From positions 20,026,001 through 20,090,000 of the forward strand of contig NC_073393.1 in assembly GCF_028641065.1 (NCBI RefSeq): DNA of 64,000 nt. Direction: 5' to 3'. This DNA comes from Leucoraja erinacea. Lineage: Eukaryota. Of this stretch, positions 5,314 through 59,118 are shown piece by piece. Under the pieces are notes generated by a model. That model did not search any database. It saw only the letters and a program-made list of their open reading frames with translations, and was not told the origin of the DNA. The first letter of the stretch is position 1, and the number at the start of each line of letters is the position of its first letter. The translations under genes and the position numbers were made by a program.

Positions 5314-5368
5314 ATGCCTTTACGGGATGTGGTTCTGTTGTTATCGTCGCTCCTGATTATAAATGCAG
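5314..5368 (+). CDS. Gene A exon 1, signal peptide MPLRDVVLLLSSLLIINA
   Basis: ATG, hydrophobic core, phase-1 donor AG|GTATT; 55 nt, the same length as the leader exons of genes B and C. Confidence 0.8.
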
Positions 5369-8300
5369 GTATTTCTCGATTTTTCTTTTGTTTTTATCTT
5401 CTTACTGACCTACACCCTCTTTGATCAACACCCGTATATCGAACGCACATCCACATTCACGCATCTTTCAAAAGTGCGACTAATTGTGTCTGGCCTCGTC
5501 TGTTATGCGATAATTTTTGATTTTCTTCTGCTACAGTTGCCGTTGATGCTCACTACCAAGTCGAACAATCTCCGACGAGCCAACAAGTGATCTTACATTC
5601 AAATATCACTCTATATTGCCTTATTGGACTATCGCAAAATAGTCCACCTGTGGAATATTATTGGTGGAAACTTGGCGAACAGAACTTTCTGCAAACAGCC
5701 TCTGACAGTAGGAAGATATTTGTTCGTTTTAAACAAGGTGGAGCCTCCTTGCAGATATTGAATATCCGTGCAGATGATGCTGGAGTCTATTACTGCGGAG
5801 TGGGTATCCAGGGAAGTGAAATGGTGAATGGATCTGGCTCCAGAATCAAAGTCTTCGGTATGTGTAACAGTAAAAGCAAATGCGCTGCAATATGGAGATG
5901 TTATTCTATTATTGTTCAATTCTATAATTCGGGAAAGCAACGTGGCCTGGTTTTCCATTCGAAGTACCCACGTTCTATGTAATATTGTGTCTTAATATCC
6001 CAGGACAACTGTCTAATTGGTTGGTTTGTTTGCTGTTAATATGAGGACGTTGCTCCAAATTCGCCGAAACAGATTCCAACACAGTTACTATATTGAGCAG
6101 TACTTTCCGAGGCCGATTAATGCGATCTGATATCTGCACTGGGTGGGAGGTATAAAGCTGGAAGAGAGGAGGGGCAGAACAAAAAGTTGGATGTAATAGA
6201 CCGACACAGTTGGGAAGCATTTCTTTGGACCATTTTATTATCAACTGCCGGTGCGGCATCAACGGCCGCCCTGTTACGGTCACTTCTCCCGTCTCCAACA
6301 TTCCCCTCATCATGGACCCTCCCTACCGGCCTTCTACCATAGCTGGATTTTGTTTATATCCAACGCGGTATCAAATTGCCGGAGCGTTATCTAACGTCTC
6401 CTCATCTCCCCCGAGTAAACATATATGGCGACACCTGATATTCCTATGTGTTGGTTTTTTTTACCAATTAATTTGTTCTTATTTCAAGAAAACTAAGTAA
6501 TATAGGGCGCTCAGTCTGGGATTTGAAAAACAGAGCAAAACCGTGAAGTTCCGAGTTAGTTAAAGATAAACTGACCATTTGTTGTAAAAAAAAAATTCAA
6601 CAGAGGTAGCAATTCACACTCTTCGAAAAAACGATTGGAAGCGCTAAAAAAAGTTTTCATTCTTCTCAGATGTTTGCTGTCAACTTGCTCATTAAGGCTT
6701 TTATTTTTAACCCATGCAGAACTCACTGACTTCATCGGTTTCACCACGAACTTTCATCCGGCACTCAAATTCACCTGGACAATTTCCGACATCTCCCTAC
6801 CGTTTCTAGACCTCATTATCTCCATCGCAGGCAACGAACTACTGACCGACACTTACTACAAACCCACTAACTCCCATGGTTATCTGGACTACACTTCTTC
6901 CCAACCTGCTTTCTGTAAGGACTCTATCCCCTACTTCCAATTCCTGCATCTGCACCCAGGATAAGGTGTTCCAAACCAGGACATCGGAGATGTCCTCATT
7001 CTTTAGGAAACGTGGGTTCCCGTCTTCGACTATAGATGAGGCTCTCACCAGGGTCTCCTCCATATCCCGTAGCTCCGCACACACTCCCCAACCCACCACT
7101 CATAACAAGGACAGAGTCCCCCTTGTCCTCACCTTCCCCCCTACCAACCGGCACGTGCAACAGATAATCCTCTGACATTTTCGCCACCTCCAATGGGATC
7201 CCACCACTGGACACATCTTCCCATCTTCTCCCCTTTTGGCTTGCTGCAGCGACCGCTCCCTCGTAATGCCCTGGTCAATTCGTGCCTTCCCACCCCTTCC
7301 CTTGAAACTGCAGGAAATGCTACACTTGTCGCTTTACCTCTGCCCTTGACTCCGTCATCGAAGGACCTAAGCTGTCTTTCCAGTTGAGGCAGAGGTTCAC
7401 CAGCACCTCCTCCAACTTCATCTATTCCGTCCATTGTTCCAGGTGTCAACTGCTTTACATCGGTGAGGCCAATCGCAGGCTTGGCGATCGCTTCGCCCTC
7501 CACCTCCACTCAGTTCACATTAACCAACCTGATCAGCACTGCAACTACCCCTCCCATTCTGAATCCGACCAGTCTGCCTGGGCCTCCTCCATGGCCATCG
7601 TGAGTCCCATCGCAAATTGGAGGAGCAGGATCTCATATTTCGCGTGGGTAGTTAGGTATGAACGTTGACTTCTCAATTTCAGGTATTCCTTGCTTTCCCC
7701 CCTTCCCCTCCCCTTCCCAGCGCTCCCACAGCCTCTGTATCCGCCTCTTCCTTTCTTCTTCCCGCCCCCACCCCCCCCCCCCCCCCCCCCCCCCCCCCAC
7801 CCCCACATCAGTCTGAAGAAGGGTCTCGACCCGAAACGTCACCTATTCCTTCGCTCCATAGATGCTGCCTTACCCGTTGAGTTTCTCCAGCATTTTTGTC
7901 CACCTACGATTTATGTTGTTGATATCCGAAAAAACTGCCGAAATAATGCTAATGCTGAACGTTCATGCACCATAACCGTGTAATTATGAGGTCGTCGACC
8001 AGTATTGTACAACATAGTTATGCCCGTGTAGTTGTTTTCCGGATCACAAATACATTTCTGTCTTACATTTGCAGTTCCGCCAGCTCAGCTCAGAATCTCC
8101 GAACTGCCTGATCAAAACTCCACCACATTGAATCTCTTGTGTCAAGCGGATGAATTTTACCCGGAGTCACTTAATCTTACTTGGTACCGAAATGGCATTG
8201 AGATTTTCGTGGACATACATACAACGGTAAAACTGACTATGATTGGATTATATGAAGTTTCCAGTCATTTAAAGGAAACAAGGACACTCCAGGGCGGGTC

Positions 8301-58629: not shown

Positions 58630-58950
58630 ACCCCCCCCTTCCCGCCCCTTCCTCTGCAAATCGGTTAATTGGCCCCACGGTCGCGATCATGTATCCCTCT
58701 TGGGCTCTCACCAGTCCCTCGCCGACAGTCAGACTGAAGAAGGGTCCTACACGAAACGTCAATTACTCAATTTCCCCAGAGATGCGACGTACTCCAGCAT
58801 TTTGTGTCAATCTTTGATGTAAACAAACATCTATCTCCCCGTCCATTTTATTACTTTCATTTCTGATCCTGCAAAACGCTCGGGTATGTGTGAGGATCAA
58901 AGCGGCTAAAAACATGAACTAATGTCTTCCCTCTAATTTTCATCTCGCAG

Positions 58951-59118
58951 ACCAAGCAGAAACCAATGCCTGGTAAAGTGATTTACGCGCCTGTCGCTAC
59001 GACGGGAAACAAGACAGGAGGAAACACAAATCGTTGGCATAATTACACGGACAACTCACAGCCAATGAAGCCAATGCGAGGGGCAGATGGTATCTATTCG
59101 GAATGGATTCCCAAGTAG
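58951..59118 (+). CDS. Terminal cytoplasmic exon 3b with canonical ITIM VIYAPV and distal GIYSEW
   Basis: catctcgcag|TKQKPMPGKVIYAPVATTG...GADGIYSEWIPK*; open 56-codon frame. Confidence 0.72.
   Translation, partial: TKQKPMPGKVIYAPVATTGNKTGGNTNRWHNYTDNSQPMKPMRGADGIYSEWIPK

Follow-up and report, generated by a model that had tools for sequence, protein, structure and literature searches.

Paired immune receptors such as KIR, LILR-PIR and NITR are encoded in tandem clusters and have near-identical ectodomains with opposite signalling ends. In KIR, LILR and NITR the activating members arise from inhibitory ones, which lose the tail and gain a charged transmembrane (TM) residue, while conversion homogenises the ectodomains. 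Cartilaginous fish are the oldest lineage with antibody-based immunity; to our knowledge they have no well-defined NK-type receptor, such receptors evolving very fast. Mammalian NKp30 has a non-rearranging VJ domain and carries a TM arginine, and shark NCR3 is said to have been found by Kinlein and colleagues in 2021 as several divergent genes; the literature treats NCR3 as a V-only, MHC-linked gene. UrIg, with three C domains and secreted by the liver, and UrIg2, with 9-11 C domains, are each presented as an individual gene with linkage to the MHC or the antigen-receptor complex (PMC12227049).

Results

Anatomy of the three genes

The window, a 64-kb stretch of DNA of the little skate, Leucoraja erinacea, contains three collinear plus-strand genes, here called A, B and C. 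Each has leader, VJ, C1 and TM exons, all of which end in phase 1, and every border is AG/GT (Table 1). The C1 domain is encoded by a single exon in each gene, and a J-like motif lies directly before the GT donor within the V exon; because V and J share one exon ending at that donor, there is no V/J break for recombination signals. Every V and C1 exon matched Pfam above the curated cut-offs (V-set, E about 1e-10; C1-set, E about 1e-11). Searches used single exons, with full-length proteins from databases (P0002, P0161 and others) in place of the spliced products. The AlphaFold model of P0161, a Mobula relative of gene C (alignment of 41 sequences), placed V at 27-126, C1 at 131-220 and a TM helix at 225-262 with high pLDDT, and the best PDB matches of this model in Foldseek were Ig light chains and a TCR beta chain. 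On the tails of full-length relatives Pfam returned only a sub-threshold match to SIT, the SHP2-interacting adaptor (14-15 bits vs a cut-off of 27.6), and in the window Rfam, run at gathering thresholds, found nothing.

Table 1. Positions in the window of the exons, exon remnants and copied tracts of genes A, B and C
Feature	Position	Strand	Description
Gene A leader exon	5314-5368	+	55 nt, phase 1, MPLRDVVLLLSSLLIINA; start ATG, hydrophobic signal peptide and splice donor GT seen in the sequence
Gene A VJ exon	5537-5857	+	321 nt, AG/GT borders; Pfam V-set 5e-10
Gene A C1-set exon	8075-8380	+	306 nt, borders checked; Pfam C1-set 1.5e-11
Gene A TM exon	11532-11639	+	108 nt; uncharged TM FLIYGCATGGIIFILLLIITMVC
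Gene A cyt1 (cytoplasmic exon 1)	15157-15200	+	44 nt
Gene A tyrosine-motif exon	15867-15977	+	111 nt; CSYAAL ... TTYAE at 3' border
Gene A last coding exon	16089-16182	+	IKRVKTSQKLIYASEELNG...stop
Gene B homogenised tract	21817-27262	+	Upstream region, leader, V, C1 and ~600 nt further; blastn
Gene B leader exon	24791-24845	+	55 nt; identical to gene C leader
Gene B VJ exon	25007-25327	+	321 nt; J-like motif in exon
Gene B C1-set exon	26337-26651	+	315 nt; 3' end 9 nt longer than that of gene C
Gene B TM exon	29181-29279	+	99 nt; Arg in outer third of TM
Gene B cyt1 fossil	30147-30186	+	By alignment: acceptor CAG -> CTG, 4-nt deletion
Gene B ITIM exon fossil	32715-33210	+	Divided by ~315-nt insertion
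Gene B last exon	34125-34300	+	1-nt deletion gives stop in ancestral frame
Second copy of gene B dead tail (32552-34228)	37643-40511	+	97% identical; blocks 37643-37934 and 39100-40511
Gene C leader exon	47329-47383	+	55 nt
Gene C VJ exon	47545-47865	+	321 nt
Gene C C1-set exon	49502-49807	+	306 nt
Gene C TM exon	51390-51494	+	105 nt; uncharged
Gene C cyt1 exon	52689-52732	+	44 nt; Amblyraja model P0001 matches it at 100%
Gene C ITIM exon, copy 1	54347-54454	+	108 nt; VPYAAL ... TLYAQ at 3' border
Gene C last exon, truncated first copy	54912-54972	+	ITIM deleted; ends at tail-duplication junction
Gene C cyt1, second copy	56597-56640	+	
Gene C ITIM exon, second copy	58466-58572	+	107 nt; 1-nt deletion gives frameshift and stop
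Gene C last exon	58951-59118	+	TKQKPMPGKVIYAPV ... GIYSEWIPK-stop

The V-set domain of gene A terminates in the J-like NGSGSRIKVF inside the same exon. An assembly gap (11694-12194) begins 54 nt past the TM donor, within the TM-to-cyt1 intron, and the exons on its two sides putatively belong to one gene, as judged from the window. For cyt1 just one open AG..GT stretch of 44 nt combines a good polypyrimidine tract with a GTAAGC donor, and its position matches that of cyt1 in gene C. In tblastn the tyrosine-motif exon matched tails of relatives, and the last exon is homologous to TVYAKIKQKAEDDKQVYATLEFSG of Callorhinchus P0040. Splicing to this last exon supplies the Ile of TTYAEI, an ITSM-type motif, and CSYAAL, with Cys at position -2, is non-canonical as an ITIM.

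In gene C both tail motifs, VPYAAL and VIYAPV, are ITIMs by the pattern S/I/V/L-x-Y-x-x-I/V/L. An internal tandem duplication encloses the tail of this gene; because the tail is duplicated, the 3' exon usage suggested by Table 1 is a candidate assignment. The second assembly gap (58129-58262) lies upstream of the second ITIM copy, in an intron of the second tail unit, and the sequence on either side of it aligns collinearly with the first unit (57866-58124 with 53838-54099, and 58265-58598 with 54148-54481). No reading frame spans either assembly gap.

Gene B combines the ectodomain of gene C with a divergent TM and tail

The homogenised tract of gene B was 94-97% identical to 42693-50449 of gene C over about 5.4 kb, transposon insertions aside, and past the tract identity was 87% and then 70-80%, the TM exon of gene B being 70% identical to that of gene C. 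Because identity is 94-97% up to C1 and only 70-80% beyond, the B/C ectodomain has been homogenised. The two proteins share 105 of 106 residues in V (a single Ala/Thr change), 95 of 101 in C1, and the whole leader. Two transposon insertions (44106-45604 and 48256-48887) are present in gene C only and absent from B, and the sequence between the two genes (27263-42692) is continuous, with no N. Differences between B and C were 11/682 in coding and 217/4665 in non-coding positions (Fisher p = 6.6e-5), and no frameshifting indels were present in 682 coding nt, against about 4.1 expected and 6 indels per kb in the flanks, but these constraint statistics do not separate the gene B lineage from the gene C lineage. 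With neutrality assumed for gene B only, the expected number of coding differences is about 16 vs the 11 observed, which is not significant.

All three tail exons of gene B are disabled. The insertion in the ITIM exon, located at the ITIM tyrosine, includes a SINE-like element (32931-33140); the remnant reads PKSAL where PYAAL stood and no longer has the second Tyr. The TM exon is identical to residues 278-311 of RefSeq model P0002, and RefSeq joins it to the last exon out of frame, which gives ...KNKDQAETDAC-stop with no motif; the horn shark isoform P0164 has the same splice from TM exon to last exon. RefSeq XP_055505064.1 ("SIRP-alpha-like") is gene B, modelled as V-C1-TM(Arg)-KNKDQAETDAC; its 5' end, drawn from 16371 and 17356 and without a signal peptide, looks like a prediction artefact. 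When the homologous-protein search was queried with the TM and tail of gene B (residues 268-319 of P0002), only P0002 itself was found to share them. The V exon of gene C, used by itself, retrieved no protein, an artefact of the length window of the search, since complete proteins are about three times as long.

Reads from four RNA runs that carry the label of this species, tissue unstated, were mapped to the gene B segment 28701-34700. Depth was zero on 28701-30900, which contains the TM exon, and on 34101-34700 in the tail region; the reads within the segment all lay on transposon sequence, either a Tc1/mariner-like element or SINE-like, with identities of 95-99%, and none on the exons of gene B.

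A preliminary description of this DNA had proposed three collinear genes with common exon sizes and phases, a non-rearranging VJ-C1 design, uncharged TMs with tyrosine motifs in A and C, a TM arginine without a tyrosine tail in B, V domains of B and C one residue apart, and a cartilaginous-fish source. These structural claims were borne out by the located exons with their checked borders and Pfam matches, by V and J joined in one exon with C1 after it, by the motifs found (CSYAAL and TTYAEI in A, VPYAAL and VIYAPV in C), by the TM reading and disabled tail exons of B, by the Ala/Thr change, and by the little skate protein XP_055505064.1, which matches the V, C1 and TM exons of gene B.

Inhibitory and short-tailed forms across cartilaginous fish

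The family of A, B and C comprises more than 100 protein clusters, nearly all from cartilaginous fish, and almost all of its proteins carry one C1 domain; relatives also make V-only isoforms (P0207). Among 79 labelled family proteins, 34 had an ITIM tail with an uncharged TM and 13 had a basic TM residue without a motif. Short tails that lack a basic TM residue occurred in 17 relatives. Members with an ITIM tail and members with a short tail and an Arg in the TM both recur in many species, and one stingray relative with a basic TM (LLISRCVWFG) is sister to an ITIM form. The preliminary description had suggested that the family may be undescribed. This stands in so far as no paper describing it was found in the literature on UrIg, PRARP, shark B7-H6/NKp30 and NCR3, and SIRP of cartilaginous fish (other papers of the field could mention it), but RefSeq already holds predictions of the proteins from about 20 species of cartilaginous fish, with automatic names that vary and are mostly "SIRP-alpha-like", and the value of the window is lessened accordingly.

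Discussion

Origin of gene B

We think it fairly probable that all three genes are real, with A and C inhibitory and gene B the activating-type counterpart of C. In A and C, binding of a ligand at the V tip would lead to phosphorylation of the ITIM/ITSM-type tyrosines, and the phosphotyrosines would recruit SHP-1/SHP-2-type phosphatases and damp cell activation. Gene B would have derived from a C-type inhibitory gene, its tail exons disabled yet recognisable and a TM arginine gained, and its promoter-to-C1 half would have been overwritten by, or exchanged with, that of gene C through gene conversion or unequal crossing-over, so that the converted half and the dead tail would leave it with the ectodomain of C on an anchor devoid of ITIMs. 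Most likely the arginine would pair with an acidic residue in an adaptor of the FcR-gamma, CD3-zeta or DAP12 type, which bears an ITAM, and gene B paired in this way would act as the activating counterpart of gene C. We infer expression, signalling partners and ligand of the three genes; their anatomy, domain types, fossil exons and mosaic identity, and the presence of both forms throughout the family, are shown directly. The paired system put forward in the preliminary description keeps the support of the sequence hallmarks that the B/C pair bears (converted ectodomain, an old, divergent TM and tail, TM arginine and fossil ITIM exons), against which stand the missing RNA reads on the TM exon of gene B.

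Those missing reads, the weak point of this reading, fit a different history, which we consider unlikely, and yet the strongest of the alternatives: gene B may be dying, because there are zero RNA reads on its TM exon or tail. It would then be a partial duplicate in decay, its TM arginine neutral and its ectodomain intact from a recent copy or conversion, and the locus would hold two inhibitory genes and a pseudogene. The disabling of all three tail exons, the lack of any orthologue found with the TM and tail of gene B, the copying of the dead tail segment itself nearby, as in a junk-rich region, and a count of 11 coding differences that is not significantly below neutral expectation for gene B all agree with such decay. 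Yet the leader, V, C1 and TM exons of gene B are open with intact AG/GT sites, its 682 coding nt are free of the frameshifting indels that the flanks would lead one to expect, and its TM exon, old by its 70% identity to that of C, is still open; moreover, ITIM loss coupled to a basic residue in the TM recurs in at least 13 relatives of several species, which is unexpected from random decay. A gene B that is expressed and non-signalling, serving either as a decoy without a tail, in competition with C for the ligand, or as a partner that forms dimers with C, seems to us improbable. The short motif-free tail KNKDQAETDAC and the 17 short-tailed relatives without a basic TM residue suit this role, and because ITIM-bearing relatives (P0164) skip the same exons and so yield tail-less isoforms, the tail-less form is independent of a charged TM. 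However, an arginine buried in a TM helix is costly unless paired, and throughout the family Arg or Lys at such depth goes together with a short tail. That B and C are haplotypes of a single locus, a possibility raised in the preliminary description, or a false duplication of it, assembled in tandem, has in its favour the 94-97% identity across 5.4 kb; it conflicts with the N-free continuity of 27263-42692, with TM exons and tails that are just 70-80% identical and differ in exon state, with the two transposon insertions confined to gene C and with the separate RefSeq model of gene B, and we set it aside as very improbable.

Returning to gene B as the activating-type counterpart of C, we put forward a broader proposal tentatively, at somewhat less than even confidence: the family, whose proteins are each laid out like one antigen-receptor chain that does not rearrange, would represent NK-type paired receptors of cartilaginous fish, a functional counterpart of KIR, LILR and NITR that is neither SIRP, UrIg nor NCR3, and the locus would record an inhibitory-to-activating conversion with its intermediate fossils still legible. 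If true, a large VJ-C1 paired-receptor family would fill the NK-type receptor gap in these fish, and many non-rearranging relatives of antigen receptors would be added to the few discussed so far (UrIg, UrIg2, NCR3, SIRP). The locus would also be a worked example of how an activating partner originates, by stepwise loss of tail exons and gain of a TM arginine, the ectodomain being kept by conversion.

Comparison with known receptor systems

The layout of A, B and C resembles that of KIR, LILR-PIR and NITR, a likeness drawn from the general description of those families; KIR and LILR use C2/I-set domains and NITR a V and an I-type domain, whereas A, B and C use VJ and C1. With UrIg and UrIg2 the family shares a single-exon VJ, a split leader, C1-type domains, the absence of rearrangement and the restriction to cartilaginous fish, but it differs in its one C1 domain, TM, ITIM tails and large multigene character. 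UrIg2 (9dmx) was the top PDB match to the family by summed score and was rejected as closest relative, since this rank comes from adding up three C domains, each worth about 20-30 bits, the V+C1 stretch giving only 42 bits. NKp30/NCR3 is similar in the non-rearranging VJ, the TM arginine, the multiple divergent shark genes and the V-only isoforms among family relatives. The C1 exon of A, B and C differs from NCR3, from which the family is set apart by description, and no RefSeq member of the family is named NCR3-like. Ig light and TCR chains have the same two-domain V-C1 fold, split leader and YYC...GxGT J motif; in those rearranging receptors V and J are separate and RSS-flanked, whereas in A, B and C they are germline-fused, with ITIM tails and a multigene organisation.

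The SIRP proteins have a comparable design, with a non-rearranging VJ-type V followed by a C1-set domain and with paired members, ITIM-tailed inhibitory ones and short-tailed ones with a basic TM residue, but they are V-C1-C1, with two C1 domains against the one of A, B and C. Among solved structures other than immunoglobulins, human SIRP-alpha (2wng) matched best, the family profile giving 55.8 bits over V+C1 and a further 37 bits on the third domain, VPPT linker included. By profile score the family's match to SIRP is no better than its match to Ig lambda, which scored highest over V+C1 (58.7 bits vs 55.8 bits), and in the ESM Atlas SIRP was the nearest named cluster (0.96). A true V-C1-C1 protein of stingray, P0209, scored 16 bits for V and 30-32 bits for C1 on profiles of the window domains, whereas all family members reached at least 55 bits for C1. 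In a C1 tree built without mammalian SIRP, tapasin or B7-H6 sequences, 79 family rows were split from 18 SIRP-like/Ig-like domains (SH-aLRT 94). The proteins of the window thus did not nest in the SIRP-like proteins sampled, and of the nesting in a characterised paired family that the preliminary description had named as a possibility, no more is seen than that SIRP lies nearest among named families. The A/B/C family is separate from the sampled three-domain SIRP-like proteins, from UrIg and from the rearranging receptors; the relative nearest to it by name, SIRP, is a paired family too.

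Results

Structure of genes A, B and C

The sequence observation on genes A, B and C was confirmed in full. Queried with the open frames of the first V and C1 exons, tblastn found exactly three exons of the V type and three of the C1 type in the window, collinear and all on the plus strand; the V exons matched Pfam V-set (E 3e-11 to 5e-10) and the C1 exons Pfam C1-set (E 7e-12 to 1.5e-11), all over the curated cut-offs. The leader (55 nt), V (321 nt), C1 (306 nt, 315 nt in B) and transmembrane (TM) exons had AG/GT flanks and phase 1 ends, and the exon borders bore out the shared sizes and phases claimed in the preliminary description, including the 44-nt first cytoplasmic exon (cyt1) of A and C. 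A J-like motif (NGSGSRIKVF in A, another 11-residue motif common to B and C) lies inside the V exon directly before the donor, and therefore V and J are germline-joined in the three genes. Their short leader exon corresponds to the split leader, the canonical layout of antigen-receptor genes according to the UrIg2 paper (PMC12227049).

Exons of genes A, B and C and disabled tail exons of B
Gene	Feature	Position	Strand	Remarks
A	leader	5314-5368	+	borders read
A	V	5537-5857	+	borders read
A	C1	8075-8380	+	borders read
A	TM	11532-11639	+	borders read; uncharged
A	cyt1	15157-15200	+	44 nt
A	tyrosine-motif exon	15867-15977	+	...FCSYAALDLSK...ERTTYAE
A	last exon	16089-16182	+	IKRVKTSQKLIYASEELNG...; completes TTYAEI
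B	leader	24791-24845	+	borders read
B	V	25007-25327	+	borders read
B	C1	26337-26651	+	borders read
B	TM	29181-29279	+	borders read; Arg in outer third of helix
B	cyt1 fossil	about 30147-30186	+	acceptor CTG not CAG; 4-nt deletion
B	tyrosine-motif exon fossil	32715-33210	+	split by ~315-nt insertion; PYAAL to PKSAL; second Tyr gone
B	last exon	34125 onward	+	1-nt deletion, stop in ancestral frame
C	leader	47329-47383	+	borders read
C	V	47545-47865	+	borders read
C	C1	49502-49807	+	borders read
C	TM	51390-51494	+	borders read; uncharged
C	cyt1, unit 1	52689-52732	+	44 nt; good
C	tyrosine-motif exon, unit 1	54347-54454	+	good; contains VPYAAL, ends ERTLYAQ
C	last exon, unit 1	54912-54972		truncated, ITIM lost
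C	cyt1, unit 2	56597-56640		good
C	tyrosine-motif exon, unit 2	58466-58572		frameshifted
C	last exon, unit 2	58951-59118	+	intact; TKQKPMPGKVIYAPV...GIYSEWIPK

Two assembly gaps (11694-12194 and 58129-58262) account for the 635 N of the window, and neither is crossed by a reading frame. The first starts 54 nt past the TM donor of A, inside the TM-to-cyt1 intron, and its flanking exons are phase-compatible and keep the family exon order, physical continuity not being provable from the window. The second lies within an intron of C tail unit 2, and both sides of it align in order with unit 1 (57866-58124 with 53838-54099, 58265-58598 with 54148-54481), so about 48 nt of intron are missing.

LINE, SINE and DNA-transposon fragments are abundant in the window. 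One LINE reverse-transcriptase family has fragments on both strands (132-4512, 8909-9636, 17787-19158, 23141-24062, 44763-46054, 55925-56375, 62980-63954). Short GC-rich tracts (7545-7808, 36499-36759, 58542-58817), whose open frames read poly-Pro/poly-Gly, are probably simple repeats of a SINE-like element.

Tyrosine-motif tails of A and C

Exon reading showed that the four claimed motifs, CSYAAL and TTYAEI in A and VPYAAL and VIYAPV in C, are all real. CSYAAL is not a canonical ITIM because it has Cys at position -2, where relatives show V, L, T or S. The tyrosine-motif exons of A and C have a conserved donor immediately after Y-A-x, and the tail junctions match other species' gene models (Amblyraja .../SM...TLYAQ; Mobula ...ERTVYAQ/TKQRPP...; slash, junction).

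The C tail region contains an internal tandem duplication in which unit 1 (52536-54972) corresponds to 55680-55813 plus 56569-59023, and whichever combination of tail exons is spliced, at least VPYAAL would be kept. The junction of this duplication (52536-59023) lies inside the last exon (54972/54977). RefSeq model P0001 (Amblyraja radiata) uses the truncated, ITIM-less last exon of unit 1, and the duplication therefore probably predates the Leucoraja/Amblyraja split.

Mosaic identity of B and C

B 21817-27262 matches C 42693-50449 at 94-97% identity, a tract that runs from the sequence upstream of the leader through the leader, V and C1 exons to some 600 nt past C1; transposon insertions at 44106-45604 and 48256-48887 break it in C alone. 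Past this tract identity falls to 87%, then to 70-80% across the TM exon and tail. Several LINE insertions set B's copy of the tract apart from C's. The leader is identical (0/55 nt), the V exon differs at 5/321 nt (four synonymous, one Ala/Thr, in agreement with the one-residue V difference claimed earlier) and the C1 exon at 6/306 nt, all non-synonymous, with an in-frame 9-nt extension in B. Divergence is lower in coding (11/682) than in non-coding sequence (217/4665; Fisher p = 6.6e-5), and where the flanks predict about 4.1 frameshifting indels, the coding part has none. This pattern suggests that B and C are an old pair, with fairly recent homogenisation of their 5' halves and constraint from then on. 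A neutral B alone would give about 16 coding differences against the 11 seen, which is not significant, so that constraint on the B lineage is not separable from that on C.

Polarised with P0001 as outgroup, the six C1 changes divide equally, three on the B and three on the C lineage. The counts of six non-synonymous and no synonymous changes in C1 (49502-49807 against 26337-26642), and of one and four in V, hint that C1 rather than V is diverging between B and C, but the sites are few and this could be chance (about 0.18).

Transmembrane arginine and fossil tail of B

As described earlier, B has a TM Arg and no Tyr tail: homologues of all three tail exons of C lie downstream of its TM exon at 70-80% identity, and all three are disabled. 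The insertion in the tyrosine-motif exon holds a SINE-like element also present at 12940-13236. This dead tail recurs 5-6 kb farther downstream (37643-37934 plus 39100-40511) as a second copy that is 97% identical and includes the SINE-split exon and last exon, with no V, C1 or TM exon near 37643-40511.

The Leucoraja erinacea RefSeq protein XP_055505064.1 (P0002) is gene B, with its V, C1 and Arg-TM exons; the model splices the TM exon directly, and out of frame, to the last exon (end ...ARKNKDQAETDAC), a skip also used by the horn shark isoform P0164 (...KNKDQPQVTG). Its N-terminus comes from 16371-16415 plus 17356-17510, in the spacer after A, skips the B leader at 24791 and lacks a signal peptide; this 5' end is probably a prediction artefact.

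Of the listed runs containing this stretch, none is recorded as RNA. We mapped four raw-read runs of the same species label from four studies (X7, X11, X14, X9; 5-25% of each read, tissue unstated) to the B region only (28701-34700). No read fell on 28701-30900, the interval with the B TM exon, or on 34101-34700, a result that at this coverage gives no verdict on silence. Every mapped read lay within SINE-like sequence or a Tc1/mariner-like element; identity was mostly 95-99%, so the reads derive from other copies. The Tc1/mariner-like transposase remnant lies in the B tail intron (31049-32700; ORF 31877-32341, minus strand) and draws many reads on both strands with many loose ends, indicating that other genomic copies are transcribed.

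The family in cartilaginous fish

When C's C1 exon was searched against 1.84 billion representative proteins, about 100 of the hits were 200-420 aa long and matched through one C1 only. A family profile built from 14 of these and searched against 5.8 billion gave 77 matches, of which 76 were chondrichthyan (E 4e-33 or better; skates, stingrays, sawfish, electric ray, many sharks and the chimaera Callorhinchus) and one was a porpoise Ig-light-chain-like protein (E = 1.6e-8). Conserved blocks are WWKxGE, DxGVYYC...NGTGSxLxV, VPPTPLKI, FYPExISFTWYKDG, GLYEASS and TVYTCLVSH. Automatic names conflict (SIRP-alpha-like, SIRP-beta-1-like, Ig lambda-like, tapasin-related-like, NCR3 ligand 1-like, CD276, MHC class II beta-like, TCR beta-like), as expected where model species have no true orthologue.

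Among 79 labelled members, 34 combine an uncharged TM with an ITIM/ITSM-type tail (LTYAAL, TEYAQL, VPYAAL and others), 13 have an outer-TM Arg or Lys and no motif (LLISRCVWFG, WVPRSAMGG, LIHRFILSF and others), four carry a motif together with a basic TM residue, 17 have a short tail and uncharged TM, and in 11 no TM was found. In the C1 tree, A falls in a group (SH-aLRT 91) with genes of horn shark, sevengill and houndshark, and B and C in one with P0001 (99), the latter group joining the stingray Arg-TM form P0005 and the Mobula ITIM form P0161 (97); the sub-lineages of A and of B/C thus appear to predate the divergence of sharks and rays. The inhibitory or activating-type label changes at least nine times on this tree, a number that B/C-style ectodomain conversion would inflate.

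Discussion

The activating/inhibitory paired system proposed in the preliminary description has good support in its sequence logic, to which the family-wide pattern adds; on the other side stands the zero RNA depth over the B TM exon in four runs. We consider that B is probably a functional activating-type partner of C. That B is a dying copy is unlikely, and has to be weighed with its disabled tail and the zero depth on one side and the frameshift-free B/C coding tract on the other; a tail-less decoy or partner chain, to be set beside both the lost tail and the TM Arg, is improbable. The near-identity of the 5' halves could be read as an assembly artefact, which is hardly credible, since the 15 kb between B and C contain no N and the 3' halves are deeply different; B and C as haplotype copies are rejected on the same grounds.

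Paired receptors of this kind are already known. We found no description of the VJ plus single-C1 scaffold or its lineage in the accessible literature; the earlier suggestion of a perhaps undescribed family needs qualifying, as the proteins are already in RefSeq.

Scored against PDB sequences over V+C1, the family profile gave 58.7 bits for the Ig lambda part of 2rcj, 55.8 for human SIRP-alpha 2wng (plus 37 on its third domain, VPPT linker included) and 42 for UrIg2, whose top PDB rank is a sum over three C domains and was rejected as a sign of nearest kinship. SIRP-alpha clusters were nearest in the ESM Atlas (0.96), and the AlphaFold model of P0161, confident in its V, C1 and TM parts, best matched Fab light chains and a TCR beta chain in Foldseek. 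When 18 SIRP-like and Ig-like C1 domains (lungfish, frog, alligator, tortoise, porpoise, stingray; mammalian SIRP, tapasin, B7-H6 and shark NCR3 not included) were added to the C1 tree, a phylogeny proposed in the preliminary description, a branch with SH-aLRT 94 separated all 79 family rows from them. Scores and tree together argue for a family distantly related to SIRP and antigen-receptor chains and nested in none of those sampled.

The stingray (Hypanus sabinus) protein P0209 has the real SIRP layout, V-C1-C1 and TM, with a J-like FGSGTEVTIRAKP and a tail carrying LQYASV and SEYAVL, and is clearly distinct from the single-C1 family: it scores 16 bits on the window V profile and 30-32 on the C1 profile, whereas all family members reach at least 55 on C1 and those with a full V exon 48-200 on V. 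Cartilaginous fish may thus have both a V-C1-C1 SIRP-type and the V-C1 family. UrIg and UrIg2, described as individual genes with three or more C domains (PMC12227049), differ from A, B and C, which fall outside that definition.
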